The notes under the pieces: generated by a model
The model's database searches: none
Told to the model about the DNA's origin: nothing
Seen by the model: the letters and a program-made list of their open reading frames with translations, nothing else
Assembly (NCBI GenBank): GCA_965240325.2
Contig: OZ251235.1
Span: 372,001-436,000 of the forward strand
Length of the DNA stretch: 64,000 nt
DNA from: Rebecca billardiae RCC1528
Taxonomy: Eukaryota > Protista > Haptophyta
Direction: 5' to 3'
In this document: positions 4,992-52,640 of the stretch, piece after piece
Layout: each line of letters starts with the position of its first letter
Position numbering within the stretch: position 1 is the stretch's first letter
Position numbers and translations under genes: made by a program

Positions 4992-7900
4992 ATGGGGGCG
5001 GAGCAGAGCGCCGCCGGCGCGGCTGGGCCCGGCGGCTCCGGGCCAGGCAGACCAGGCGCTCGAAACCCGGGCGGGGCGACAGCCCAGGGCGCCGCGGCCG
5101 CGGCCAAGCTCAAGCGCGGGGCGGCGGGAGCGAACGAGCGAGCGACGGGGGCCTCTGCTCCGCATGGGCAGGGGGCTGCATGCGGCGCGAAGTCGGGCCC
5201 GGCATCCAGCGTGGTCCATCCGAAGTCGGGCAGCACGCACCATGCCGCGCACGCCAGGGCCGCGGCGGGCGCGCACCGGCCGCCACCCGGGGGCGCCGCT
5301 GCCCCGACCTCGAGCTTTGGGCTGCACATCACGCATGCGGATGCTTCTTCGGCCCCTGACCCGGGCTCCATGCACGGCGAGCAGCCGGCCGGGATCATAC
5401 CGGCCTTTCGCCCCGGCGCGAAGCTCAAGGGCGCCGCGCGCGCAGCGGCGCTGGGCGCGGTGCGCGTGGCTAGATTGTCCGGCGGCGGGCACAAGGAGGC
5501 CGAGGCTGCGCAGCTCGGGGTGTCGGCGCCGGCGCCGCCGGCCCCCGCGGCTGACAACCTGCCGGTCCCTCCCGAGATCGTGGTGCCCAGCTCCGCGCCC
5601 ACGACGCCCGCCAAGCCTGGCGGCGCGGCGCTCGCCCCCACGCGCTTCCGCGCCAAGTGTCTCGCGCCCACCTGCTCGGCCGCGTCCGCGGGCGCGTCGG
5701 CCGCGTCGGCTGCCAGCACCCCCGAGCGGCCGCAGAACGTGCACCTCGCGCACGCCGGCGGCGCGGGCGTGGCCTCCCTGCTCGGCGTCGCGGGCGGCCT
5801 GCGCTCGCCGGCGGCCTCGCAGGCCTCGGCCGACTCGTTCGGCACGAGCGTCTCGAAGAAGGCGCCTTCGTCCACGCTGCTCGGCACGGGCGAGCTCAAC
5901 TCGATCAACTTCGCCGACGCGCACCTGCGGCCGTACGTGCCGCCCGAGAAGGGCATCACGCTGTCCGACATGCGCGAGTTCCACGAGCGCAGGCAGAACG
6001 TCAAGCTCGCGCAGTATGGCCGCGCCTTTTCAGAGTGCGCGCGGCGCGCGCGTGCCGACCCGCCCGCCGGCGCGCGCGCGCTCACGCCGCGCGGCTGCTC
6101 CCCCCTCCGCGCGCGCGCGCGCTGCCTCCTGCTGCGCTCGGCGCGGCCGCCTCTCGCGATCGCGCGCAGGATGTCGGCGCTCGACCAGGCGCTCTGCTTC
6201 AACCGCATCCTGCACTTCGACCAGGAGGTCGGGCGGATGATCTCGGGCGCGGGCCGCTTCATGCACTGCACAGACCTGCCGTCGATGCTCGAAGAGGCGA
6301 TCCGCTGCACCAAGGCCGCGCTCTCGTGCGCGCGCGTGCGCGTGTTCGAGGTGGACTACGCCAACACGACGCCGGGCGTGAGCGTGCGCACGGCCGAGGG
6401 CTTCTCGCTGCTGCTCGTCGCGGGCGAGTCCGGGCTGATCGGCCAGCCGGTCTCGATGCTCGACTTTGCCGGCCGCGTGTGCCACGCCGACGGCGCGCGC
6501 GCCATCAACCGCCTCGACCTCAAGGGCGACGCCCGCTACGGCGAGGCGTACCGGTACATGGAGCAGGTGAGCAAGTTCACGCCGACGTCGCTGATCGGCG
6601 TGCCCGTGCGCGCGCCGCACCGCAAGGGGCGCCCGCGCTTCGTCATCGAGGCGTACAACAAGGAGCGCGACGCGGACTTTGACGAAGCCGACTGCTACGT
6701 GCTCGAGCTGATTGCAGAGGCGGTCGCGGCCGCGGCCGCGTGGATCCGCAACGCGACGTACGCGTCGCTCGCCGCCGAGTTCACGGACACGGTGCTGCAG
6801 ACGCACTCGCTGTACGACTTCGACTGCAAGGCGTGCGAGGTGCTCACGCGCATCTTCGAGTGCGAGGAGGCGTGCGTGTACTATGTCGACGGCGCGCGCG
6901 ACGCCATCTGGCGCTTTGCGGACGCGCGCAACGAGCAGACGGGCCGGCAGCACCGCGTGTGGTTCGGGCGGAACACGCGCTCGATCGCGACGCACCAGCT
7001 CGAGCGCGCGCTCGGCCACGGGCGCAAGCGCTCCACCGCGTCGATCGGCGCCGCCGCCGCCGCCGCGCCGGCGAGCGCGCAAGGCTCGGGCGCAGACGGG
7101 GCCGAGGGCGCGCGCGGCGCCGAGACGCCGGTCGAGGCGATTGCCGGCTCGGCCGACGTGGGGGACAGCGACAGCGGGAGCGAGCGGCGCGGCCGCGGGC
7201 GGCGCGGCGGCGGTGGCGGCGGCAGCGGCGACGAGAGCGACGAGGGCAGCAGCTCGGACTCGCCGAGCGCCTCGGGCTCGGCCGCGGGGGACGGCTCGGC
7301 GCGCGGCGCCGAGCGGCCAGCCGCTCCGTCCGGAGGCGCGGCGCAGCGCGCGGCGCACGAGCAGCAGCAGGAGCAGAAGGCGCACCTGAGCGCGACGGTG
7401 GTGAACGAGGCGGAGCGCTCCGCGCTCTTCAACGCGGACATCGACAAGTCGGTCACCCTGCGCTGCCGCAACCTGATGGTCGTCGCCATCTTCGCCGTGC
7501 GCGAGGACGGCAGCGCGGACAGCGCGCGGCCGCTCGCCGTCGTGCAGCTGCGCAACCGGATCGCCAACATCAACATCCACAAGCACATGCGCTCGTCGGG
7601 CGCGTTCCGCTCGTCGGATGTGGCGCAGCTCTCCGCGTTCGCGCGGCAGGTGCGCGCGCGCCGGGCGCGCGCCGCGCGGCGCGCGTGCAGAGCGCCCCAT
7701 CCGCCGCGCGGCGGTGGCGCGCGCCGACGCGCGCGCGCCGCGCGCTCCGCGCCTCCCCCGCGCAGGCGGCGAGTGCGTTCGAGCAGGCGCTTGAGATGGA
7801 GCGCGCGCGCGAGGCGGAGCTGGTGCAGCTCACGGCCGAGGGGTGCGCGCGCGCGGTGATGGAGCTGGCCAACACCCTCGCCGCCGAGAACCCCACGCAC

Positions 7901-10561: not shown

Positions 10562-11278
10562 TGCCGTCGAGCTCTCGCTGCGCGACCTTCGCGCGGACGA
10601 GGAGCACCTTCTCCTTGGAGCGCGTCGCCGCGTCCACCGTGGCGATTTGCTCGTTCTTCTCCTTGATCTTGCTCGTGATCGGGACGAGCGAGGGCAGCTG
10701 CCGCGCAAGCGTCACGAACGTGCTCTCCGGCATCAGGTTCAGGCTGCCGCCCGTTCTGGTGAAGAGGTCGGTGCTCACGCTGGAGTTGGAGCTTGCGAAC
10801 TTGGCAAACTCGTTCGTCACGCCAGTGAGCATCTGGTTGGTCTTCGCGCTGTCGCCCAGCTGCTCGAGGCCGAGCTCGCGCGCGGACGTCGTCGCCCGCG
10901 CGGATCCGCTGTCCGCGGCGCCCGCGGCGCTGCGACCGGTTGGGTGGGCCATGCCCGGCGGTCCGTGGTTACGCACGATTGAGCTCATGATGTTTATTCC
11001 GCCTTACCAGTTCCCCGGTCACGCAGGGGCTTATGACAGTGTCCCTGCGGACGTCGTCAGCAGCGCCGTCCGTGCGGACGAGCGGGCGGTGCGTCCTCAG
11101 AAACGAATGCAAAAAGCGGTGGGGGGCAAACGGCCGCCATACGTAACTGGCAGCGCAGCTTTCGCCTGCAGCTCTGCAGGCAGTGCCGGATACTTCGACC
11201 ATCCGGACGGTTGGAGCCAACCGCCTGGAGAAGAAAAGAAATCGTCGTGCACGTAGGAAATTCGGGATTAATACAACA
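10562..11278 (-). mobile_element. LTR (10988-11278) plus adjacent putative gag-like ORF truncated by the gap
   Basis: Both ends are the reverse complement of the ends of the solo LTR at 14704-15114; TG..CA termini; no TSD; ORF MSSIVRNHG... runs from the LTR edge into the gap. Confidence 0.7.
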
Positions 11279-11493
11279 CATTATATAAACGGCTCGGTAC
11301 ATATCATCTGCTGAAGACAATCACTGGGGGTCTGATTCTGAACTAAGTTTCCTCGTCATCGCGTCGGCAAGCTAGCTATATATATATAGGCATCGTAGAC
11401 GTATAGCATCGCCTTGAACTGACCGGCATCGCCTGTCCGCGGCGCGACCGCCTGGTAGGGAGCACTGGTACCTAGCTTTCAAGTTTCAAGAGC

Positions 11494-13564: not shown

Positions 13565-14703
13565 CCGAGTAGGGAGTCAGTGGCCCGAACGGGAAGGGTC
13601 AGTGGCGCTAACTAGCAGTAACTGCTAACCGTGCCGTACCCTGCGGGCGTGGAGACGTACTCGGCCAGTGCGGAGGCGGGAGCCGAGCCGGCCGCGTGCC
13701 CGCGCCGCACGGGCCGTGGGGCGTGAGTACGGTCGACGAGCGCCGGTGGCGGGTGGCCGGGTGGCGGGGCACTGCGTCCGCGACTGGCGACATCGGCTGA
13801 CTCAGCTGTCAGCAGTCAGCACTCTCTTATTCGACAGCATGTCCGGCAGTGGCCGACTCGACCGCAGTGGAGTGGTGCCAGGGCAACAGTACGGCGGTCG
13901 CGGGCCGAGCGGCCGCCGTCTGCCCGCCTCGGTCGGTACGGTTTGAGGAGTTCAAGGGTGGGGGTGGTGCCTGGTGGTTGGTTGACTTGGTTGGGGCCGG
14001 CTTGGCCAGGGGCAGGCAGCTCGGGAGGCCGTTCGGCCCGGGCCCGAGTCCGCGCTACGATCACCCGCCGTGGCGCCGGGCCCGGAGCCCAGACGGCCAG
14101 AGTTTTAGTTAGTATTAAACGGGTCCAATTTATTACTCATATCACTCGACAATCTCGACATTGATGACTGACTCATAGCCATGAGTCATGTCAATTTACA
14201 TTTGTCATCATCAGTAGTCTCGTCATGCATGTACTGATTGTAGTCATCACTAGTCTCCGATCGACCGATGACTCATGAGTCAGCGATTGACAAATCACAA
14301 ATGACAGACATTGACTCCGAGGCAGACCGAGCCGCACTGTGTAAGAGTGTGATGCGATAACGACCGCAGCCGCAGGCTCGTGGCAGCTGACCAAATCCGC
14401 AGCCGGACTGCCAGAGGACCGCAGACGACACGTCCTCCATGCTTCGCACCAGCGGCTGAGCCGGATCGCTGGCCACAGGACGGTCTGAGTGACAGGAACT
14501 AGCCAGGATCCGCAACGCAGGGCCGCCAGGCCCAGGCCCTGGCGGGCCAGGCGCGCGGACACCGCATTCCTTCGCCTGTGCCGATCGGACTAAGTTAAGT
14601 CAAGTCGCATGCCCGACCGTAGGCTGACCGGCCACGGCCGACAGGGCGACAGCGCCGCGTGACGGCGCGCGCCGGGCCCGGGCCACCAGAGTGAGAGTCA
14701 ATC

Positions 14704-15114
14704 TGTTGTATTAATCCCGAATTTCCTCCGTGCACGATTTCTTTTCCTTTCCAGGCGCTTGGATCCAACCGCCAGGAGAGGTCGAGTCCCAGGTACTACT
14801 CGCTGTCGTACCTGCCCTCCCTGAACCGGCGCGAGCGCGCTCGGCCCCTAATCCTATTGCTTTCGCCGCTGCCCGCAGGCGAACGCAAGCCGCCGGTTAC
14901 GTATATACGTTTTCCCCCGGCGCTATTGGTCTAACGACCGGCCAATCAGTTTACTGGTGGCCGCCGTTTGCCCTTGACATTGACTTGTGACCCGTGTGGG
15001 ACGACTCCCGCACCGCCCGCTCGTCCGCACGGACGACGCTGCTGACGACGTCCGCAGGTACACTGTGATAAGCCCCTGCGTGACCGGGGAACTGGTAAGG
15101 CGGAATAAACATCA
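14704..15114 (+). mobile_element. Solo LTR (411 bp)
   Basis: TGTTG...CATCA termini; 5-bp TSD CAATC at 14699-14703 and 15115-15119; AATAAA near the 3' end; homologous to 10988-11278. Confidence 0.88.
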
Positions 15115-30613: not shown

Positions 30614-31367
30614 CAGGTGGATACGGGTGATCTGGACAGTTTACTAAGAATAAGAGACGCACACAGCTCAGGCAGGCGAGATTGACGCCCGCCAACTGTC
30701 ACCGCCCATGAAGCCGTCGCCGATGGTAGCGCCGCCGGAAAACCAAATTCCCCTTTATAACGGGCTCCGGGTGATCAGACTGGCGGCCGAAGCCTCCAGC
30801 GGCCGACCCAACTCACGCGGAGGCCTCCCTGGGAGCATTGGGGTCGAAGGGGCGCCAGGGACGGACTTCAGGGGGTCCCTGGAGTTCCGCCGCAGCGCGC
30901 TTTCTGCGCTGCGGGCCCGTCTCCGCGCGTGGCGGCCGCAATGGCACTGTCCAATTAGCCCCTGGCACTGGCTGAGGCATGGGAATCGAGCTCAGAGACG
31001 CGCGCGCGGAGGAAAAGCGTGTGCAGCGGCTCGGACGGTTGCTCTGGGACCTACCCACGCCAGCGCAACCGCGCCTTGCCTCGGAGTCCGCCCTTCCTGA
31101 GTCCGCGCACGCGCCTTGCGGCTTGAAACGCTGGCGTTCGCCCTTGTGCGCGGGACTCACGAAACAAGGCGAAGGCGGCGAGAAGCGCGACCTGGCGCGT
31201 GCGCAGACGACGTCTCACGACCAGGTGAGTTCAGCGAACATCGTGCGCCGTCGTGGCGACCCGCCAGTGGGCGCTCGTGCTCGTTCGCCCACGAGCCCTC
31301 GCCACGAGGCCCGCCGCCCGCTGAGTGTCCAGATAGCCCCTGTGTCCAGTTAGCCCGTATCCACCTG
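30614..31367. mobile_element. Tc1/mariner-type MITE, long copy (754 bp)
   Basis: TIR CAGGTGGATACGGG (imperfect to about 25 bp), TA on both flanks; near-identical copy at 51950-52543. Confidence 0.92.
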
Positions 31368-31555
31368 TATGGTCGTCAAGCCATGCTGCAGCCCAGATCT
31401 CGATTTCATGAGATATCACCCCGTCCGCCGCTCACGTGGCGCGCACGCACGGCGCATCTCTCCGGTGAAGGTCAATTTGCCGCGCGCTGCATCCGTCATC
31501 ATCGTCGGACTTTGCCGGCATCGCCGCCACGCGGACGCTCGCTGGCGCCCTCTTC

Positions 31556-39874: not shown

Positions 39875-40587
<713 letters not shown>

Positions 40588-40591
40588 ATGA

Positions 40592-41290
40592 TTAACGACG
40601 TGGTATGCCGAACCGGCAGGCGTCAGAGTCAGCAAGCTGTAGCAGCAGATCCGGAGCAGCAGAGACAAACAACGACAGGATCAGCGCTCCTCGCCGTCGT
40701 CCCCCCCTTGTAGTCGCCCATCATGCGCCCATCACTCCATCGCCGAGCGGAAGCTCGACGCACCGTCTGTCTCAGTCTGGCGTCGACGCGCGCGCGCCAC
40801 CGCGGTGGTCGCGGTGCCACGCGTCGTCAGCCGTCGTCTCGAAGTAGTCGTCGTATGCAGCGCCCCCGCGGGCGCGTGCCCCCGAGCGCACATGCGCCAT
40901 GCGCGCGCGGGCGATGAGCATCTTGGCCTGGCCACGCAGGCAGCGCATGCCCAGCTCGCGCCGCATCGGCGCATGGTGCCGAGCAGCGCGCGCTCGGCGG
41001 CGGGGCGCGAGGGGGCGGCGAGGGCGCGCTGAGGCGCGCGCGCCACGTGTCCCGCCCCATCTTGGCGATCTTCTTGAGGGTGAGGTCCACCTAGCCGCGC
41101 TCCACTCGCCGAACGCCCCCACGACAATCGGGACGATCGCGGGGAAGGTGTCGAGCCGCGCCTCGTATGGGCCCACCTGGCCCTCAAGGCCTCAAGTTGC
41201 GTGCCCGGTAGTGAGTACGGAGTGTACGGACCCCAAGAGGCAAGACGGAAGAGTCGGAACGGACGGTCCGGCATCTCGGGTCGTCGAAAT
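40592..41290 (-). mobile_element. 5'-truncated, frameshifted CRE-like (RLE) non-LTR retrotransposon remnant
   Basis: GPYEARLDTFPAIVPIVVGAFGEWS, LKKIAKMG..W and RRELGMRCLRGQAKMLIAR resemble the C-terminus of RLE-type ORFs; 3' end motif adjoins a TA array. Confidence 0.65.
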
Positions 41291-41352
41291 AATAAGGCTA
41301 TAAGCCGCAGTCATCGAATAAAACCCGAGACCCGGCGCATGATTAATGATTA

Positions 41353-43203
41353 TGGCGCACGGCCCCCCCGAAAGGTCTGAGCGTGAGCGAAAGCCGGGGG
41401 GGGCGGCGCACGTGCTCCGCAAAATCAAAAAAGAGGATGCGCGCAGGATTTGGGGGATTTTTGTAGGTGGATTTAGGTGTGAAATCCGCATTTGACTCGA
41501 TATCGCTGCTCATGATTGCGTTTGTACTGCTCCTTAATCCTTGGATAGTAAGTAATAGAAGAAATCGAACTCGAATAGGACAAAGGCGTCTGCATCTTTC
41601 TGATAATTATGGTGGGCCGTTCGTTGTTCTCCTGCTGATATACTTTTGGTTTGCTGATTCCAATTCAAAGAGTAAAGTATCGTCTCCTATTATCCTTCTC
41701 CTCTGAAGAGAACCACACTTCAGCAAAAACAACGTTTCAGTATCAACGTATTATGGCACGACGTTCGTCATCGCGGCTCGTTTGTCTATTGGTACCCGCG
41801 AAATGAACCCTGCCAGATCTTCGCCTAATCAAAAACGCCTAGGCACGCGTTTTCGCACCGTTTCGCCGTACCATTTATGAGATTAACTTATAATTATACA
41901 AACTTACAAAAACGGCGGTTCGCTTCGACCAGAATATATGCGCCCGTGCGGGCGTGGCCGACTAAGTGATATGACCAAATGAGGGAATCTTACCCGTAAG
42001 CGTTATTTGGCGGCCCCGGCACACGCCGAGCGACCGAGGGCGATCGGAGGCTCAAAGCCGAAAAGGCTCTCGTTTTGCGTGCCGGTGCGCGCGACTCAGC
42101 GCAGGTGCGCGCACTGCAGCTGCGGCGGGTCCCAACAGCCGTCGGCATCGCATTCGTGCCTCGCTCACCCCACGCGCCCCGCCCTGCCATGCGTCTTCGG
42201 CCCAAAGTGTACACCCCGCCCGGCCCGCGGCGTCGGCGCCCGCCGACGAAGTACGTTCACGAACACGGCCATCGGACTGCCGCGCCGCGCAGGTGACTCG
42301 ACCTCGAGCGAGCCTGGGGCGTGGAGGCGACCGACGGCGGGGTGCGACTTGCCCACCGACCCGAGCTGCATCACCCAGCGCAGCTTCGCCCGCGACGATG
42401 CTTCGCCTGGCTACCACTGCTCAGCCTCGTTACCCACCGGCTGTGATGGCGACGCTGTCTGTCCGCGCGGCGTGCGGCGGCGCGCAGGCAGGGAGAGCGG
42501 CAGCCCGGGGCACCGAGCCGCAGGACGAGCTCTTGCTGGAGGACTCGCCCGAGCGCGCGTTCGCGCGCTTGCACACCGCGCTGCGCACCATGCACGACCA
42601 GCGCGTCCTGCGCTTCTACACGCAGAACGACTCGTCGTGGACGATCGATCACGGGACATTGGCCTGCTGCAGTCGCAGTATCGGCGCACGTGCTGCACGC
42701 GACCTCGCAGCGCGCGTGGCCCGCATTCGAGGGGAAGACGCCGAGGGCGTGCAAGGAGCGGCTGCTGCGGCTGCGGGACATCGTAGACAGGCTCGAGCCG
42801 CGGCTGCTCGCGACGCTCTTCCCCGCCGACGCCGACGACGAGCTGCGCGAGCTTGTCCGACGCTGCGCCGATCCCGCCGGCGCGCCAGGCTGTGCGAGGC
42901 TGACGGACGGGCTGCCGAGCGCGATCTCCTCAGCGCTGCGCGCGGCCACAGCAGGGCTGCCCGAAGCGCACCGGGCGGAGGCGCTGCGGCTGCTGCGCGT
43001 CGAGTTCGACACGGCCCAGCCCCCCGAGGCCGTCGATCGAGTCCGGATTACTCGCGCCCGCGCCTCCTGCACGGCGACGGCGCCGGGCGCGCGCATCGTA
43101 GTGATAAATTCGTCACAGTGATTCGGTGAAGAACGCGACAACTACCAGGGCCGTGCGCCATCAACTTCGTTGTTCACTACCCGAAGATCGGCGTAGCCGA
43201 TCA
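41353..43203 (+). mobile_element. Helitron2/Helentron-like non-autonomous element, copy A
   Basis: 5' IR TGGCGCACGGCCC, subterminal 3' IR at 43148-43160, hairpin GATCGGC-GTA-GCCGATC at 43186-43202, no TSD; both ends shared with copy B. Confidence 0.7.
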
Positions 43204-43263
43204 GAATGATATATATGATTACAATAATAAAGCTGCATGCTGCAACGGGCAACTCGTGCTTCA

Positions 43264-45282
43264 TCACAGGACTGGCATCGGCGCCCGACGGAGCCCTGCG
43301 GGCGCCGGGAGGGCGAACCGCTCCGGCTCGGCTGAGTCGTCATGGCCAAGGGCGGGGCTCAACCCGGCGATCAGCTCGTTGGCGTCGTCCTCGCCCATGT
43401 TGAGCCGCTTGCGTGGCGGCGCGCCAAGCGAGGAGCCGACAGGCGAGAGCAGAGGCCCTGCGTCCGCGCCACCGAGCTGCCCTGGGTCGCCGCCGCCGCC
43501 GCCGACCGGCGCTCGGCCCACGGGCGCGACGAGCCCCGCGCGCCTCGACGACGGCGGCGCGGGCGCGGGCGCGCGAACACGATACAGCGCGCCGTCCGCG
43601 CCGTCCGCGCCGTCCGGCTCGGCGGCCAGCTCGCCGTGCGCGCCACCGCCGGCGCGGAACACGCGTGGCGGCACGAGCTTGATGCGCCCCGGGCGCATTG
43701 CGCTGCCTGGCCGGCCCCGTGTGCTCCGCACCCATCCTGTGGGTCCGCCAGCGCCCGGCTCGGCGGCGGCCGGCACTGGCCTAGGCGCGGCCGTCGCGAG
43801 CGGGCCGCCGCCGCCGCCGCCGAGCTTCGCGCCCGCGCGCGCCGCGGCAGCCGCGGCCGCACCCCGCGCCTGTGACGCCGGGGGGCCGAAGCTCCCGTTG
43901 TCCTGCCCGCCCCCGCCCCCGCTGCTCTCGCGCCTGAGGCTGTGGCGCGCGCTGCCGCCAAAACTGCCCTCTCGCGCGAGGCTGCGGGCAGGATGCTCCT
44001 CCGCGTGCACGGGCGTGTGCACGGGCCTGCGCGGCGGTCCGCTGCCCCTGATGGGCGGCGTGACGGGCCGAAGCACCTCGGGCGAGGCGGGCAGCGGGGG
44101 CGAGGGCACCGCCGCGGCGGCGCTCGGCACCACGACGACGGTGAGCTCGTCCGCCCCCTCCTCCCGCTCAGCGCCGCTCTCAATCGACGGCAGCCGCCGC
44201 CCGCGATCAAATGCGCGCTTCACGCGGTCGGCGGCGCTCGTGTAGTACGAGCCCGCCGCGGCCCTCGCGCCCGTCGCCACGCCACCGCTCGAGCGCCGCG
44301 TGCTCGTGGGCGCGCCGCCGACGGGCGGCAGCGCCGGCCCGAGCAGGTCGTAGCGCACGCGCTCGAGTCCGCCTCGCGGCGCGGCCGCGCGCCTGCGCGT
44401 GCCGCCCTCGAGCGCGCGCGGCTGCGCGCGCAGCGCCTCCGCGAGCTGTCGCGCCGCGCGGCCGCGCGCGTGCGCCTGCAGCCGCCGGGCCGCCGCGTGC
44501 TGCGCCAGCCTGCGCTCCACGATGGCGTTCACCGCCGAGAGGTCGGCGATGATCGGCCCGCCCTGCGTCGGCTCGGCGGCGGTGAGCGAGCCGAGCACGG
44601 AGCCGGCGAGCCGCTCGCCCGACGCGTCGCGCTCGAGGCAGAGGTGCATGTTCGCCAGCGCGCCCGCGGCGAAGGAGCGCACGCCCTCGGCCGGGTGCGA
44701 GAGCAGCGTGCGCAGCAGCGTGTGCCCCTTGCGCTTCGCCAGCGCCGCGCACGCGTCGGCGTTGTTGAAGGTGAGGTTCTGCAGCGCGGCGAGGACCTGC
44801 GTGAGCGTGATCGCCTCGGGGTCGAACTCGTGCTCGAGCGACTCGGTGGTCGTGAAGCCCTGGCTGCTGATGCCGTCGCGGCAGCGCTTGCGCGCCGCCT
44901 GCAGCAGCACGCCCGGCGCGCGCGCCCCGAGCAGCAGCTCCTGCCCGTGCTCGTCGAACGCGAGGTTGGCGAGAACGACCGACGCGTAGATCACGCAGTG
45001 CAGGTCGGAGAGGCGCAGCAGCGGCATCACGTGCTGCAGCGTCGAGGGCGGCAGCGCGTGCGCCACCTTGCGCACATCCTCCCTCGAGCACGTCTCCGCG
45101 AGCGCGTGGCACACGCTGCGGCGCACCTCGGGCTCGCGTGCGCGCGCGAGGGCCTGCGAGAAGCTAAACAGCCGCTCGTGCAGGCCGGCGACCTCGTAAG
45201 CTGGCGTGCCCGGCAAGCTCGCGTGCTGCGTGCTCGCCTGCGAGAGCGCGTCGCTCTCGCAGCTGGATTGCGGCATCTGCAT
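43264..45282 (-). CDS. Armadillo-repeat protein with an IQ-like motif and a low-complexity tail
   Basis: ARM-like YASVVLANLA, VLAALQNLT and FAAGALANM; IQ-like AAARRLQAHARGRAAR. Confidence 0.75.
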   Translation of the reverse strand: MQMPQSSCESDALSQASTQHASLPGTPAYEVAGLHERLFSFSQALARAREPEVRRSVCHALAETCSREDVRKVAHALPPSTLQHVMPLLRLSDLHCVIYASVVLANLAFDEHGQELLLGARAPGVLLQAARKRCRDGISSQGFTTTESLEHEFDPEAITLTQVLAALQNLTFNNADACAALAKRKGHTLLRTLLSHPAEGVRSFAAGALANMHLCLERDASGERLAGSVLGSLTAAEPTQGGPIIADLSAVNAIVERRLAQHAAARRLQAHARGRAARQLAEALRAQPRALEGGTRRRAAAPRGGLERVRYDLLGPALPPVGGAPTSTRRSSGGVATGARAAAGSYYTSAADRVKRAFDRGRRLPSIESGAEREEGADELTVVVVPSAAAAVPSPPLPASPEVLRPVTPPIRGSGPPRRPVHTPVHAEEHPARSLAREGSFGGSARHSLRRESSGGGGGQDNGSFGPPASQARGAAAAAAARAGAKLGGGGGGPLATAAPRPVPAAAEPGAGGPTGWVRSTRGRPGSAMRPGRIKLVPPRVFRAGGGAHGELAAEPDGADGADGALYRVRAPAPAPPSSRRAGLVAPVGRAPVGGGGGDPGQLGGADAGPLLSPVGSSLGAPPRKRLNMGEDDANELIAGLSPALGHDDSAEPERFALPAPAGLRRAPMPVL

Positions 45283-45822
45283 CGCAGGGGCCCTGGCAGC
45301 CACCCAGCTTCAGCCTGCTGGGTTCAACCGACTGGTGGTCGCCAGCGACACGGCTGTGGATGGCGAATCGACGAGCCGCAACGAGCTGCGAGGAGTCGTC
45401 GAGGTTTAGCCGCAGCTTGCGGATCTTGGTAACAGCGGAGTGCATCTAAAGCAGCTATTTTAAGCATACGCCGAAACTGAAACCGCATAGGGAAACGAAA
45501 AGTCATGAAGACGTGTCTATGATACTGGATGGGATGAAGATGAGCGTGGGTAGCCGGGGGTCGTCAATTGAGCATCTTCCTATACGCATTTATGGAACTT
45601 TGCTGGTCAAAGGGGGGAGCTGGTAAAAATGCGGTTGACGTCAAACAAACATGAATAGAGCGCGCATCCCCCTCCAATATGTGATCCCGAGCTTGATGCG
45701 AAGGATGCGTTCGTTTTCGATTCCCAGTTCCACACGCATGAAGAACGCCCGGAATCCGTACCAACAGTCCGGTCCGGAGCTACCAGCCCCCGTCGGCTTG
45801 CCGCTCAAGAAACGGCGGCCCC

Positions 45823-46669
45823 ATGGAGGATGAGAGCATCTTGCAGGAGCTCTCTGGGGGCACTGGTGACAACATCGTGAGTGACTTCACCACATACGAG
45901 GACTACCTCGACTCGCAGATCTCCGAGACAGACCTCTACTACTTGGAGGATGAGGTGCGTGCCTTGCGCGCACGCGCGCGCAAGCAGCGAGCTGCGATCC
46001 CCATCAGGCGGCGCGGCGCGTGCGTCGCGGCTCACGATGGCTGGCGATGCGGTGGCCCGCCGTGCGCCGCAGGACCTCGCGCGCCAACTGGTCGAACTCG
46101 GCTACCGCGGCTCGGGCGAGACGCTGAAGCGCGAGGAGTTCGAAGCGCGAAAGCGAGCGGCCGAGGCGGCGCGGCTGTCAAAGCTGCGCGCAGCGCCCAA
46201 AGCGCTCGCCTCGGCCAACAAGGAGAAGCAGATCGCCGAGTCACCATTCCTCGCAGCACTCGCCGAGCGCGAGGAGATGGTTCGCAACGGCAAGCTCACC
46301 ACCGTCCTCTTCATCCGCGACCGCAACGCCAAGGGGCAGGAGGTGTCGGGGTACATTGACTATGCGCACCGGCTCAAAGCGGAGAACTTCGAGCCCTACT
46401 TCGAGGGCAAGAAGAAGCTGCTGCCCAAGCCGTCGGACCTCTCCTTCTACAACTGGGAGACGCAGACGAGCACGTCGAACCACACGCCCAACTTCCAAGT
46501 GATCGCCGACAACGAGTCCGGGCTTCTCTTCAAGAACAAGCGCGACCGCAAGGTGATCAACGTCGACCCAAAGGCCAAGCCGGGCGACAACTCGCGGCGG
46601 ATAGAGATCTCGGCCAAGGAGTACATCCAGGTCGTCATATACGACCACGTGACGCGCCGAAAGACCTAG
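45823..46669 (+). CDS. CFAP299: Cilia- and flagella-associated protein 299 (DUF4464); intron 45955-46072
   Basis: [57 protein letters not shown] and YDHVTRRK motifs. Confidence 0.93.
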
Positions 46670-48315
46670 GGCGCACGCTCGCCATCGCGTGCATCGCAAT
46701 TAGGCTCCAAAGACACAGTGATTCCGCGTTCGAACTCCGAGTGTCATCCCGATCCGCCGGCCGCTCCGCCGCGCGGCGGGAGGGCGGCCGGTCCGGCCGC
46801 TGACTGAAGTCACTCGAGATCACTGTGAAGAACTCATATCATTATACGATTTACGACCTTGACAGGTCGAATGTCATAGTCGTCATTAGAATACTATTTA
46901 ACCGTCTTACCGACGACTATTACTATTTACTACGTTGACTGATTGACCGGATTTTCATTTAGTAATTATAAAGTAATACGCCGTGGGCGGCCGTGGCGAC
47001 GCCTTCAGACTTTTGTCTTTTGAACCGCCGGCCCGCAGTTGGCGGTTAGATGACCAATTCGTCGATCCAATAATAATTCTGTATTTTTATTTTATTAAAA
47101 ATACACAGGCACGAGGGGCGCCGCCAGCTCTCCTTCCTGATTCGTCTGTCGTGGTACTCAGGTCGAAGCTTGCAGCAGTGGCAGTGGTGTGAGCACGTTG
47201 ATGTATTGGTCGCCATGGTCTGATGGTGGATGTTGTTGACTCACTAATAATTTATTTGTTGTCGTCACGTCGTCGTCGACGTCGTCAGGCCCGCCAGGAT
47301 TCGACCCGTTGCACGGGTGCGTGACCGTAGGGCGGTGAAAATGCGACGTACCGGTGAAAATACGGTTTTGCAACTAGCGCTGGGCGATGGCTGCCGGGCG
47401 CGACGAGCCGAGCGGATTGGTGCACGGGGAATCCAATTCCCCGTGCACCAATCCAATCCGTTCGTCGCCAGGTGCTGCCGTTGCCGAGATCGAGCTGCAA
47501 AACCCTCAGCAGGTGGTCAAGAGAAGGAAACGGGGAGGGCTGTCGCAGCGCGCGCGCCGCGGTGGGAAGAGAGAAGGGCTTGCCTCCCAACTGCAGCTTT
47601 GGCAGCGTTCCCTCTTGCGGCAGTGGAAGCCGACGACGAGGAGGATGACGACGCAGCTGCTGATGACTGCTGCGAAGCAGCAGCGGTGACACTCTGCGGT
47701 GCACAGCTGCCACCGCGCGCGCCGCGCGCGACTCGGTCTCGGACTCGGGTGATGGCGACAGCAGGCGCAGCACAGCAGTCCTCATGAAGACGATGAAGCT
47801 GCGTGCACGGGTGCACGAGGTGGCAGGCGAAAGCGCGCCGACGAGACAGCACTTGACACGCCTGAGCGCACGCCCATGCTCGCCGAGCGCGAGCGCTGCA
47901 AGTGCAACTACAGTGCGCGCCGAGGCTGTACTCGGCGGCACTGCGTCCGCGGTCATCGTCTCTTCACTTGTCGAGGCTGCTGCTGCGGCGGGCCGGGGGC
48001 ACTACCCGGCACGCGCGGCGTAGCGCGCTAGACGGAAGGTGATGGTAGACGCACTGTTACGCTCCCGCCGCCGCCGCCGCCGCCTGCAAGACTATCGTCA
48101 CTCTAGGCCGCGCCGAAGTGTCGTTTTTTCGGCGCTCACGCTTGCAACGGGTCATTCAGGAAGTCGGCATAGGTACCAAATCAAAGGCGGGTGAGCATGT
48201 TGGCGTCAGCAAGGCCGTCCCCTACTTGGTCAGCAGCGGGTGGATGATGTCGTCGCCTACTTCGGGAGACCGTCCGTCCGCGCGGCGCTAGCTGGCTAAA
48301 TTTATAACCGCGTGC

Positions 48316-48781
48316 TAGGGGGGTCAGCCGTCAGAGCCCCACTGACAGTGCGCCACTGTAGTGGGGTGTGTGGCCCAAAATCCAACTTTCTGTCGTCTTG
48401 AGATGAGGCTCTCAAGCTTCGGGATGTCAATATTCGCCTGAAATGTCCTGGGGTCACGCTGACAAGTTTTTCGAAAAAATGTCACATACTGGCGGAGATA
48501 TACGACCTCAATCTCGACGCGATCTCGGCAACATTAGTAGGGGAGATACATGATCTCCAAGGTGATCTCGACGCTATTTGCACCAGAATCGCACCGGCTA
48601 GATCACATGTTCGCAGTCTGAAATCAGTGGCACAGGCGGATTCTACACCCTGGAATTAAGCCTTAACGCCTAGTACTAACTAGTTCGTCCAAGTATATAC
48701 CCGTGTGATAGTTCATGCTATAAGATATTTCGGGAGATTGTGGCACCAGGGAGTGTAACGGTCGGAGCTCTGACCCCACTA
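48316..48781. mobile_element. MITE with short TIRs and a 9-bp TSD
   Basis: TAGGGGGGTCAG...CTGACCCCACTA; ACCGCGTGC at 48307-48315 and 48782-48790. Confidence 0.85.
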
Positions 48782-48862
48782 ACCGCGTGCGGCGTGTGAC
48801 GGCGTGTCTGCCATTGAGACCTCAGGCCAGTCAATACTCAATTATTAGACAATATGATACCA

Positions 48863-51593
48863 TGATCGGCTACGCCGATCTTCGGGTAGTAAACAACGAA
48901 GTTGAGGGCGCACGGCCCTGGTATCTAGTCAGTGTCGCGCGCGTTCTTCACGACTGCTGAATCACGTTGCGCGCGCGCCCCGGCCCGGCGCGTCGCCGTA
49001 CACGAGGGCGACTGTGAGCACGGGTTAGACTGAGAGGGGAGCACGGCGTCGCCCGTAGCATATGCCACCTCGCCATCGTCGCAGACTCGCCGCTCGCAGA
49101 TCTAAGCCTGTGGCTCGTCTCGTCGGTCAGGCAGTCAGGCATCCGTCGAGTGATGACTGCGTCAGACGACTGCGCGTTGCAGCCGCAGCCATACGGCATA
49201 CCGTACATACATACGCTCTCAGCGGGACTACGCGCGAGTTGTTCATCTGCCTTGTAACGGTGCCGGCACGTGGCGCGACGATTCTGGCGTCATTATCACT
49301 TGACGACTCGACTGATCACGACGAGTGCCGTCATCGTCTGGTTCCCCTGAGAAGTCTTCTGGAATGCATCAGCGACATGCTCCCGCAGCCTGGTCAGTGG
49401 TCCAAGCCAGTCACATCCGGCAGCCTGACATCATCCCACATGCCGCGCGGGCAGAGAGGCGCGCTATGCCCACGCGACTGGCTTCCTAGAAGCTGCCGTG
49501 ACGGAACGAGTGTCAGCAGTGGACCGCCGGCCGGTGCCGCGCGCCGCACCGCCGGGCCCAATGGCAACCGGAACACCCGGTGGCCGGCGGTGCGGCCCTA
49601 GGCTAGTGCGGCGGATCTATCGCGTATAGAACGACCGGCCGTGACGCGCTCTGCACCACGTACATTCGGACGCGGCAATGAGCAGCATGCACCACCGTCC
49701 GGCCGTCTCAGGTCGCTGTCGTCGGCAGCCAGCCGGTGCCGGGCACGGTGGCGCCGGGCGCTCGCAGCTGAAGGACCGCGATGGCAAGGCCGGATTGATT
49801 GCCAAGTCGTCAGCCGACGACTGGGAAGTTGAGCCTGATGCTGCCCGCTGCCGGTTCGCGGGACGAATGACGAGCAGCCTATGGTCCGTGAACCTGCGTC
49901 AGCTCCTAGAACTCTTCCAGACGTGGTGAGGATATCCCTCACTGCGAACTCAGCCCTCTCGCGCTGACGCAGCGCGTAGACCTTGCGGCCTGCTGCGTGC
50001 CGCGAGCTATCGGACAGCGCGGCCCGCCGGCCGCGGGCCTTGGGCGGCGGGTCGACGGCTCCAGGCAGCTGCGGAGGACGCGGAGGCCGGTCGCATCCCG
50101 GCCAATGCGTGGGCATCGGCCCGGCGGTTGGGCCCGTCAGCACGTCGGCAAGCGCTCTGATGCCACTCGACTCTCGAGACTGGCTGCCGAGCCGTGTCGC
50201 GCAACCGTGCCCGGCAAGACACGTGGGTCCGCGCCGAGCGTTCACCGGCCTCCGAACCCGCGCACGCCTACCAGCCCAGGGCCAGGGCACGCGCCGTCGA
50301 GCTGCCCAGTCGCAAGCAGCTCGACAGCCCCGCTGTGTGCGCGCGCCCTGCCGGTCCGTCCGCTGCCCGCTCGAGGGCGAGCACGCGGCGCCTCACCTGT
50401 CGACCACGACAGCGCGCCTCGCGTGCACACTCTGACGGCGAGGCCCGGGATCTGGGCATGCGATGGCACTACCCGCGCCTCCGCCAAGTCTCGGCCTGGC
50501 CGAGGGGTGCAACACCGGCCGAGCCCTCGGCCCGGCGCGCCGCCGCCAGCCTGAATGCGCTGAAAAGCCCCGAAGCCGTGCGCGGCAGGCCTGCGCGTGC
50601 GAGCGGCGATGGGCGTGGGCGGCGTTGCGCGGCGCGAAGTGGGCCAGGGGCATACGTCAGCCTCGACTCCGCCGCGTCGCGCGCGGCCGAGCGCGCGCTC
50701 TGCGCGCGGGGCGCGCGACGCGAGGCGGGCGCTCGCGCACACACACGGCCATCCCATCCGGGAGGCTCCGCGACGGCTCAAGCCCCGCGCCGCCTCCGCA
50801 ACCCGACTCACGGCCGCAGGAGCGCCCGGCGCGAGCGGCCCGGCGAAGGTCGGGCCGCCTCCCCTCGTGAGCAACCCGAGTCTTCGTCAGCCTCTGTGAG
50901 CCCGGAGTGCTGCGCAGTCACGAGTTTAGCGAAGCAGCACCCTGAACCCCGTACTACAGTTTACTATGATTTAACGTGCACACTTGGTTAAGGCGTGATA
51001 TCTGATGTACTCATTTCGTGTTGTATTGCGTACCCACCTCTTTATGCTATGCACTTGCATATGTATGTGATTAAGGCGACAACCGTCCAAAAACGGACAG
51101 AGATGAGATAGGCAGAGAGCCTAGAAGTGACGGTTCGTTAGCTCGTACCATTATGAAACTTTACCACCTTGATAACCGTATGATACTGACCAGGGCGGGA
51201 ACGTCGATTCAAGCTACCCGCGCAATACCATATCGCGTCGCTTTGATGAATCTGAGCAGTGAACAGCTATCCAGAGAATTCGTTCGATATCTCACCTTTT
51301 TATAATCAGTTCAACACACGAATCTTGACTATCAGAAAGGTATCAGAGATGACTTCGTCCTATTTGATTCCGATTTCTTCTATTACTTTACTATCCAAGG
51401 ATTAAGGAGCAGTACAAACGCAATCATGAGCAGCGAAATGGGGTCTCTATGCTGCGGATTTCACACCTAAATCCACCTACAAAAATCCCCCAAATCCTGC
51501 GCGCATCCTCTTTTTTGATTTTGCGGAGCACGTGCGCCGCCCCCCCCCCGGCTTTCGCTCACGCTCAGACCTTTCGGGGGGGGCCGTGCGCCA
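48863..51593 (-). mobile_element. Helitron2/Helentron-like non-autonomous element, copy B
   Basis: 51330-51593 is the reverse complement of about 41353-41605; 48863-49010 is the reverse complement of about 43060-43203; interior strongly diverged. Confidence 0.7.
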
Positions 51594-51949: not shown

Positions 51950-52543
51950 CAGGTGGATACGGGTGATCTGGACAGTGGCCGACCCAACTCACGCGGAGGC
52001 CTCCCTGGGAGCATTGGGGTCGAAGGGGCGCCAGGGACGGACTTCAGGGGGTCCCTGGAGTTCCGCCGCAGCGCGCTTTCTGCGCTGCGGGCCCGTCTCC
52101 GCGCGTGGCGGCCGCAATGGCACTGTCCAATTAGCCCCTGGCACTGGCTGAGGCATGGGAATCGAGCTCAGAGACGCGCGCGCGGAGGAAAAGCGTGTGC
52201 AGCGGCTCGGACGGTTGCTCTGGGACCTACCCACGCCAGCGCAACCGCGCCTTGCCTCGGAGTCCGCCCTTCCTGAGTCCGCGCACGCGCCTTGCGGCTT
52301 GAAACGCTGGCGTTCGCCCTTGTGCGCGGGACTCACGAAACAAGGCGAAGGCGGCGAGAAGCGCGACCTGGCGCGTGCGCAGACGACGTCTCACGACCAG
52401 GTGAGTTCAGCGAACATCGTGCGCCGTCGTGGCGACCCGCCAGTGGGCGCTCGTGCTCGTTCGCCCACGAGCCCTCGCCACGAGGCCCGCCGCCCGCTGA
52501 GTGTCCAGATAGCCCCTGTGTCCAGTTAGCCCGTATCCACCTG
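51950..52543. mobile_element. Tc1/mariner-type MITE, short copy (594 bp)
   Basis: Same TIRs and TA flanks as 30614-31367; lacks about 160 bp near the left end. Confidence 0.92.
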
Positions 52544-52640
52544 TAGCTAATCACTGAGCCGCCATCGCCGTAGCTACGTACGTCTCCCGATCGCCGACGC
52601 TGAACAGCGCAGGAGGACGCCGGCCGGCGGCGGCGGCGTC

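Follow-up and report, generated by a model that had tools for sequence, protein, structure and literature searches.

A high-copy family of non-autonomous transposons with Helitron2-type ends in the haptophyte Rebecca billardiae

Two inverted elements, copy A and copy B, in a 64,000-bp stretch of the Rebecca billardiae RCC1528 genome (contig OZ251235.1, positions 372,001 to 436,000; G000:C18:372001-436000; hereafter the window) are most probably members of a single Helitron-type transposon family, non-autonomous, abundant and recently active, whose ends follow the Helitron2 (HLE2) design. The architecture, the target, the copy number and the presence of intact Rep-helicases in this 72-Mb, very GC-rich assembly of 41 contigs are all observed. 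Because no Rep-helicase element with the family termini was found, we infer rolling-circle movement from the architecture, and the mobilising enzyme would be a Rep-helicase acting in trans. The family is a new one of a known kind, so that a first-pass annotation of the window, which had called it possibly undescribed, holds at the level of the family only.

The element runs from TGGCGCAC to a hairpin followed by a single A (ending at GCCGATCA) and lies between host T-N-A and host T. Its features in the two copies are as follows (window coordinates).

41350-41352, plus strand: target bases TTA to the left of copy A, following the T-N-A rule
41353-43203, plus strand: copy A, 1851 bp, complete and non-autonomous, from the commonest subfamily, bounded by TTA on the left and G on the right
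41353-41365, plus strand: 5' asymmetric terminal inverted repeat TGGCGCACGGCCC of copy A, 13 nt from element base 1
41355-41409, plus strand: 5' hairpin of copy A, with GCGC/CG pairs and a C7/G8 stem, the loop holding GAAAGG and GCGAAAGC
41363-41369, 41387-41394 and 41396-41403, plus strand: C7 run, GCGAAAGC and G8 run of copy A
41405-41412, plus strand: second, direct GGCGCACG
41353-41605, plus strand: universal 5' module of about 253 bp, common to all subfamilies
43148-43160, plus strand: 3' asymmetric inverted repeat GGGCCGTGCGCCA of copy A, ending 43 nt from the 3' end
43186-43202, plus strand: 3' hairpin GATCGGC-GTA-GCCGATC of copy A, with the terminal A at 43203
48863-51593, minus strand: copy B, 2731 bp, complete, from another subfamily with the same termini and other cargo
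51593-51581, minus strand: 5' inverted repeat TGGCGCACGGCCC of copy B
51591-51534, minus strand: 5' hairpin of copy B, with C8/G10 runs
48918-48906, minus strand: 3' inverted repeat GGGCCGTGCGCCC of copy B, its outermost base unpaired with the 5' T
48880-48864, minus strand: 3' hairpin GATCGGC-GTA-GCCGATC of copy B, with the terminal A at 48863

The 5' repeat was invariant in the 13 copies that were fully read, and in both copy A and copy B its reverse complement, GGGCCGTGCGCC(A/C), stops 43 nt short of the 3' end, with a 25-nt spacer between it and the 3' hairpin. Part of the 5' repeat is taken up in the 5' hairpin of copy A, where the G run and GCGC pair with the C run and bases 3-9. Folded as single-stranded DNA it reached -19.3 kcal/mol, modestly better than shuffled sequence (z -2.1), and that of copy B reached -19.4 kcal/mol (z -1.7); with z at about -2, the importance that the first-pass annotation had attached to GAAA mini-hairpins in this fold was not borne out. 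One further copy (L015; G000:C7:1875497-1878644, minus strand) has the arms of its 5' hairpin expanded to 27 C and about 20 G. The 3' hairpin, with a 7-bp stem and a GTA loop, is small and clearly non-random (-7.3 kcal/mol, z -4.8). Every feature that had been described for the two copies was present, exact to the base. Helitron2 elements are defined by a 5' inverted repeat of 8-16 nt lying 0-2 bp from the 5' end, a 5' hairpin formed with downstream bases, an inner 3' partner upstream of the 3' hairpin and about 20-40 nt from the end, and no regular duplication (PMC3627910). The terminal 5' repeat, 5' hairpin, inner 3' partner, 3' hairpin, 5' T and absence of a fixed duplication found here confirm the Helitron2 end design that had been proposed, and the family agrees with the published description of Helitron2/HLE2 in all structural points except the T^T target (PMC3627910, PMC5148889, PMC11417382).

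Exact matches across the genome established a real mobile-element family, as had been supposed: the 26-nt 5' core, from the hairpin loop, occurred 257 times (117 forward, 140 reverse) and the 18-nt 3' terminus 255 times (115 forward, 140 reverse), and the reversed control patterns of both termini gave no match. The two ends co-occur genome-wide. The first-pass annotation had named failure of the ends to co-occur, or duplications of fixed length, as refuting its reading, and on both counts the outcome favoured that reading. Among the first 100 positions for each terminus, pairing was scored from 94 left ends on four contigs; 81 of these had a right end downstream on the same strand, 68 of them within 3.6 kb (chance expectation for such pairing <1%), and among these matches the sizes of the paired elements peaked near 1.85 and 2.03 kb. 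Copies are 99-100% identical, which points to a young and recently active family. Most insertions lie in AT-rich intergenic DNA. In the AT-rich spacer between two tail-to-tail copies (G000:C1:1390286-1390358) there is also an orphan fragment of the family 3' terminus, 29 bp long.

The family is modular, its 5' and 3' modules being kept while the interior is swapped between subfamilies. Resemblance to copy A is lost at base 253 in many copies and deeper in the element, as far as about base 500, in others; 30 sampled left ends fell into 16 cargo groups, and a 3' module of about 190 bp was common to all 30 sampled right ends. No Pfam family was recognised in ten of the largest reading frames of copy A and of a 6.6-kb copy (L066), and the earlier statement that no Rep or HUH frame is visible was upheld, neither Rep nor any other Pfam domain being found in copies A and B or in L066. 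The long open frames in the cargo reflect a GC content of 70-89%. The elements had no match in Rfam, and exact-match scans of public metagenome contigs with either terminus returned none.

To define the target, both flanks were read for 25 paired copies. Position -3 was T in all 25, position -1 was A in 24 and position +1 was T in 24, giving a consensus of A-T-T-A before and T-A-T after the element. Two head-to-tail junctions elsewhere in the genome join GCCGATCA directly to TGGCGCAC (GATCA/TGGCG), with no base between them in a search that allowed up to 12, and a tail-to-tail junction, seen once, reads CA/TG. Read most simply, this is an element T...A with T-N-A^T as its insertion site. The motif at the left border (TTA^T) recurs at the right end (GA-TCA^T), so that a nuclease of one specificity could make the two cuts and select the target, and this recurrence would explain how elements come to be inserted immediately after a resident copy. 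Mariner- or Harbinger-like duplication of TA or TWA was rejected, the two flanking bases agreeing in 4 of the first 13 paired copies, no more than chance. For one copy nested in another repeat (L068) no empty site was found, its flank being single-copy.

The first-pass annotation had described the elements as lacking target-site duplications; this stands in so far as none of fixed length occurred among the 25 pairs, but six of them, copy B included, carry a variable duplication of 5-13 bp, the start of the right flank recurring at the left junction or no more than 8 bases from it. The six are 13 bp with 8 filler bases, 9 bp with 4 filler bases, 7 bp, 5 bp, 5 bp, and in copy B TGGTA with GTGACTAG, and mismatched flank pairs showed such duplications at a rate of 2.5% (binomial P about 3e-5).

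51606-51594, minus strand: left flank of copy B, with TGGTA at 51606-51602 (again at 48862-48858) and the 8 extra bases GTGACTAG at 51601-51594

The filler of copy B recurs as a 7-mer near its own 3' repeat, within chance, and templated filler was discarded as an explanation. The left flank of L015, CTGACACTAG, resembles these 8 filler bases.

We looked for the enzyme among the Rep-helicase Helitrons resident in the genome. A domain search gave five Helitron_like_N loci and a few PIF1-type loci, and six Rep-helicase loci were counted. The H1 family has four copies (99.4-99.9% identical), two of them with uninterrupted frames of 3640 and 3519 aa that contain Rep and helicase; H2 (C39) has a frame of 2606 aa, and H3 (C3) is broken. 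All three uninterrupted frames carry Helitron_like_N and PIF1 domains. On G000:C33, a 12.4-kb H1 with the 3640-aa frame (777915-790351; L078, L065, L079) is nested in a 1.56-kb Helitron2-type repeat, and the empty site of this host repeat, ACAGTTTA directly followed by CTAAG, lies on another contig (G000:C32:279050-279190; L093), which rules out the repeat as H1's own ends. At the filled site TA or TAC is present on either side, so that 2-3 junction bases are ambiguous or duplicated. H1 begins CGCACAAC... and ends ...ATCGA-AAAA-TCGAT-CA, with T-N-A to its left in two copies and a 9-nt inner inverted repeat about 45 nt from its 3' end. Copy A shares an internal segment with this Helitron.

42424-43076, plus strand: segment spanning bases 1072-1724 of copy A, which matches an internal stretch of H1 at 89% identity (C33 reverse strand 7099-7756; blastn, tblastn)

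The last 70 bp or so of this segment are present in 30 of 30 sampled right ends. These 650 bp at 89% identity in H1 indicate that the family and a Rep-helicase Helitron have exchanged sequence or share an ancestor. Termini of the family also pair on the same strand at larger distances, 14.9 kb (C1:3179548-3194432), 11.6 kb (C3:3482184-3493752) and 8.1 kb (C7:3348410-3356533); in a comparison of locations, none of these three pairs overlapped any Rep or helicase match.

Movement of the family can be pictured in the following way. A trans-acting Rep-helicase would nick a single strand at the T-N-A^T of the left border (host TTA^TGGCG) and unwind toward the 3' end, where the hairpin would be recognised as the stop and the strand cut after the terminal A, at the recurrence of the motif (GATCA^T). 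The 5' repeat and its inner 3' partner may mark the endpoint by pairing, as has been proposed for the two asymmetric repeats of Helitron2 (PMC3627910). The single strand would then be joined into a T-N-A^T target without regular duplication, and host repair of the second strand might occasionally leave a duplication of 5-13 bp or a few filler bases.

Several observations weigh against a Helitron2-type family moved in this manner. The A^T-like target differs from the T^T usual for HLE2, and the 3' repeat is farther from the hairpin (25-nt spacer, ending 43 nt from the end) than published (20-30 nt). No Rep or helicase was present in any element read that is bounded by family termini. H1 (C33), H2 (C39) and H3 (C3) were each rejected as the autonomous partner, the family termini being absent from the 3.5-7.5 kb read beyond their frames, and the terminal 200-300 bp of H1 showed no significant similarity to the family ends. 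DUF6570, a marker of HLE2, was not detected in the candidate partners H1 and H2 (E<=10 in the thirds that hold the Rep domain, E<=0.01 in the rest). The covariation of the inverted repeats that had been suggested as a check was not seen and none is possible, since the repeats never vary. Finally, an element T...A at A^T and an element GG...TC with a 2-bp AT duplication are indistinguishable by sequence.

One way to accommodate the missing partner, possible though rather unlikely in our judgement, is that the family has no autonomous copy of its own and is cross-mobilised by the Rep-helicases of Helitron families with unrelated termini, recognition depending only on the shared architecture (T-N-A^T at the left border, the right end and the target, together with the hairpin-CA end). 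If so, this algal lineage would be a natural test of the minimal sequence need of a Helitron transposase, and the variable duplications and filler bases would be traces of second-strand resolution. We regard it as improbable that the mover is a different single-strand enzyme, for instance a helicase-less Rep of Replitron type or one of IS200/IS605 type, which reads the subterminal hairpins and cuts next to a short fixed motif. Such an enzyme would fit the lack of family termini at H1, H2 and H3; features reminiscent of IS200/IS605 are the insertion immediately 3' of a short conserved flank motif, a hairpin at each end and a trinucleotide common to the two cut sites, variable duplications are also made by Replitron-1 (PMC10288648), and family copies of 6-15 kb are outside the set of elements read. 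However, the Replitron type is defined by short direct terminal repeats (PMC10288648), of which the family has none, the TnpB/Fanzor zinc-ribbon domain (PF07282) is absent from the genome, and the large frames tried in the 6.6-kb copy gave no Pfam domain. The end design, moreover, fits Helitron2 in every structural point, and the resident Rep-helicase Helitrons share with the family both the hairpin-CA end and sequence.

A DNA transposon of cut-and-paste type, GGCGCAC...GCCGATC, with unusually asymmetric ends and an AT duplication of 2 bp, predicts the same filled and empty sites as insertion at A^T, and when the first T and the last A are counted as host bases, AT does stand at both borders in 23 of 25 copies. 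We nevertheless consider it very unlikely: its 3' repeat would lie 43 nt inside a precisely conserved end, unlike terminal inverted repeats, the variable 5-13 bp duplications with filler do not suit a fixed staggered cut, about 255 near-identical copies keep their hairpins strictly conserved, and no transposase was found in any copy. Least credible of all is that the common ends are conserved intergenic or regulatory modules, or a segmental duplication, and not element termini. The copies do lie in AT-rich intergenic DNA adjoining genes, yet about 255 of them are spread over many contigs with sharp borders, unrelated flanks, consistent sizes and orientation, and nested and head-to-tail arrangements, and the flank analysis refutes this explanation in practice.

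Within the window, about 260 bp of the 5' end and 61-144 bp of the 3' end are common to copies A and B, whose interiors are unrelated. A self-BLAST of the window aligned 41344-41605 with 51603-51330 (89%) and 43143-43203 with 48923-48863 (97%) and nothing between, and a repeat search identified a perfect inverted pair of 95 nt (41396-41490 and 51453-51547). Copy A is 99.1-99.6% identical over its length to the copies of 1.85-2.0 kb on other contigs (L071-L076), the exception being a segment of about 150 bp that is present once or twice. Copy B has one near-full relative (C8, 98% identical) and five or six partial relatives (95-99%), and its cargo is partly common to another high-copy repeat; this repeat (G000:C27:1323323-1327756 and more than ten similar loci) has a multi-part, partly inverted layout and about 1.6 kb in common with the copy B cargo at 88-95%. 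Because ordinary host genes separate copies A and B, including one for a DUF4464 protein (45881-46666), the two are independent insertions in AT-rich spacers and not one composite.

Other repeats were observed around the two copies. Immediately upstream of copy A are long (TA)n microsatellites (40190-40600), and the family sits in AT-rich DNA within a window that is otherwise 70-86% GC. A 573-bp direct repeat occurs twice at 99.8% identity about 21 kb apart (30797-31369 and 51973-52545), its second copy about 380 bp upstream of the 5' end of copy B. Another short repeat is present as two inverted copies, at 10988-11330 (plus strand) and 14700-15114 (minus strand); it starts TGATGTTTATTCC and ends GGGATTAATACAACA, again T...CA ends, and may be a further Helitron-like family.

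Together, these results provide a clean, high-copy and very young example of a Helitron2-type family outside green algae, fungi and animals, with borders that the head-to-tail junctions fix to the base. It combines the HLE2 end architecture with an A^T-type target, and a single trinucleotide rule (T-N-A^T) that fits both cut sites and the target offers a simple hypothesis. Variable duplications have been published for some Chlamydomonas Helitron2 families (PMC3627910) and for Replitron-1 (PMC10288648); with variable duplications or filler at about a quarter of insertions, the family extends a feature reported so far for HUH elements of Chlamydomonas. For annotation, roughly 255 insertions can be recognised by their end modules of 253 bp and roughly 190 bp, where the GC-rich cargo might otherwise pass for genes.

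Compared with known systems, the family stands apart from cut-and-paste transposons, which have terminal inverted repeats at both extreme ends and a fixed duplication, by its 3' repeat 43 nt inside. It differs likewise from Helentrons, with their apurinic-endonuclease domain and T^T target: H1 and H2 contain no endonuclease domain and the family target is not T^T, so that the Helentron-like label of the first-pass annotation was dropped. Replitrons, HUH-type copy-and-paste elements of algae, resemble the family in their right-end palindrome and, in Replitron-1, in variable duplications, but are marked by short direct terminal repeats and a helicase-less Rep (PMC10288648), neither of which was seen in the family (ends TGGCGCAC and GCCGATCA), where no search used a model of this Rep. 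Canonical Helitrons (HLE1) likewise insert between A and T without duplication, have a 3' hairpin and capture cargo; they begin with TC where the family has TG, end in a hairpin followed by about 10 nt and CTRR where the family has hairpin-A (GATCA, the hairpin 1 nt from the end), and lack both the inverted repeat and the 5' hairpin. The fungal elements FoHeli1 and FoHeli2 of Fusarium oxysporum and the Chaetomium Helitrons (PMC5148889) share asymmetric inverted repeats and hairpins at both ends, and their target, TNAT^A/T (PMC5148889), is the T-N-A-T string of the family if the element's first T is assigned to the host, whereas their TCAG...ATTTT termini are unrelated and they are autonomous, with a Rep-helicase. 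H1 differs in its 5' end and in encoding Rep and helicase, and shares with the family a 3' hairpin followed by CA, the same last six bases (CGATCA), T-N-A to the left and an inner repeat. The remaining comparison is with Helitron-1N1_CRe and CRe-1,2,3 of Chlamydomonas reinhardtii (Bao and Jurka 2013, PMC3627910), from which the family differs in its haptophyte host, its target (T-N-A^T as against TTTT^T/C), the absence of Fanzor cargo and of an autonomous partner among the elements found, and the length of the occasional variable duplications (5-13 bp as against 7-19 bp). Like the family, these Chlamydomonas Helitron2 elements have a 5' repeat of 13 nt that is strictly terminal and takes part in a 5' hairpin, an inner 3' partner upstream of the 3' hairpin, a 5' T, no regular duplication, and short common termini around unrelated interiors.

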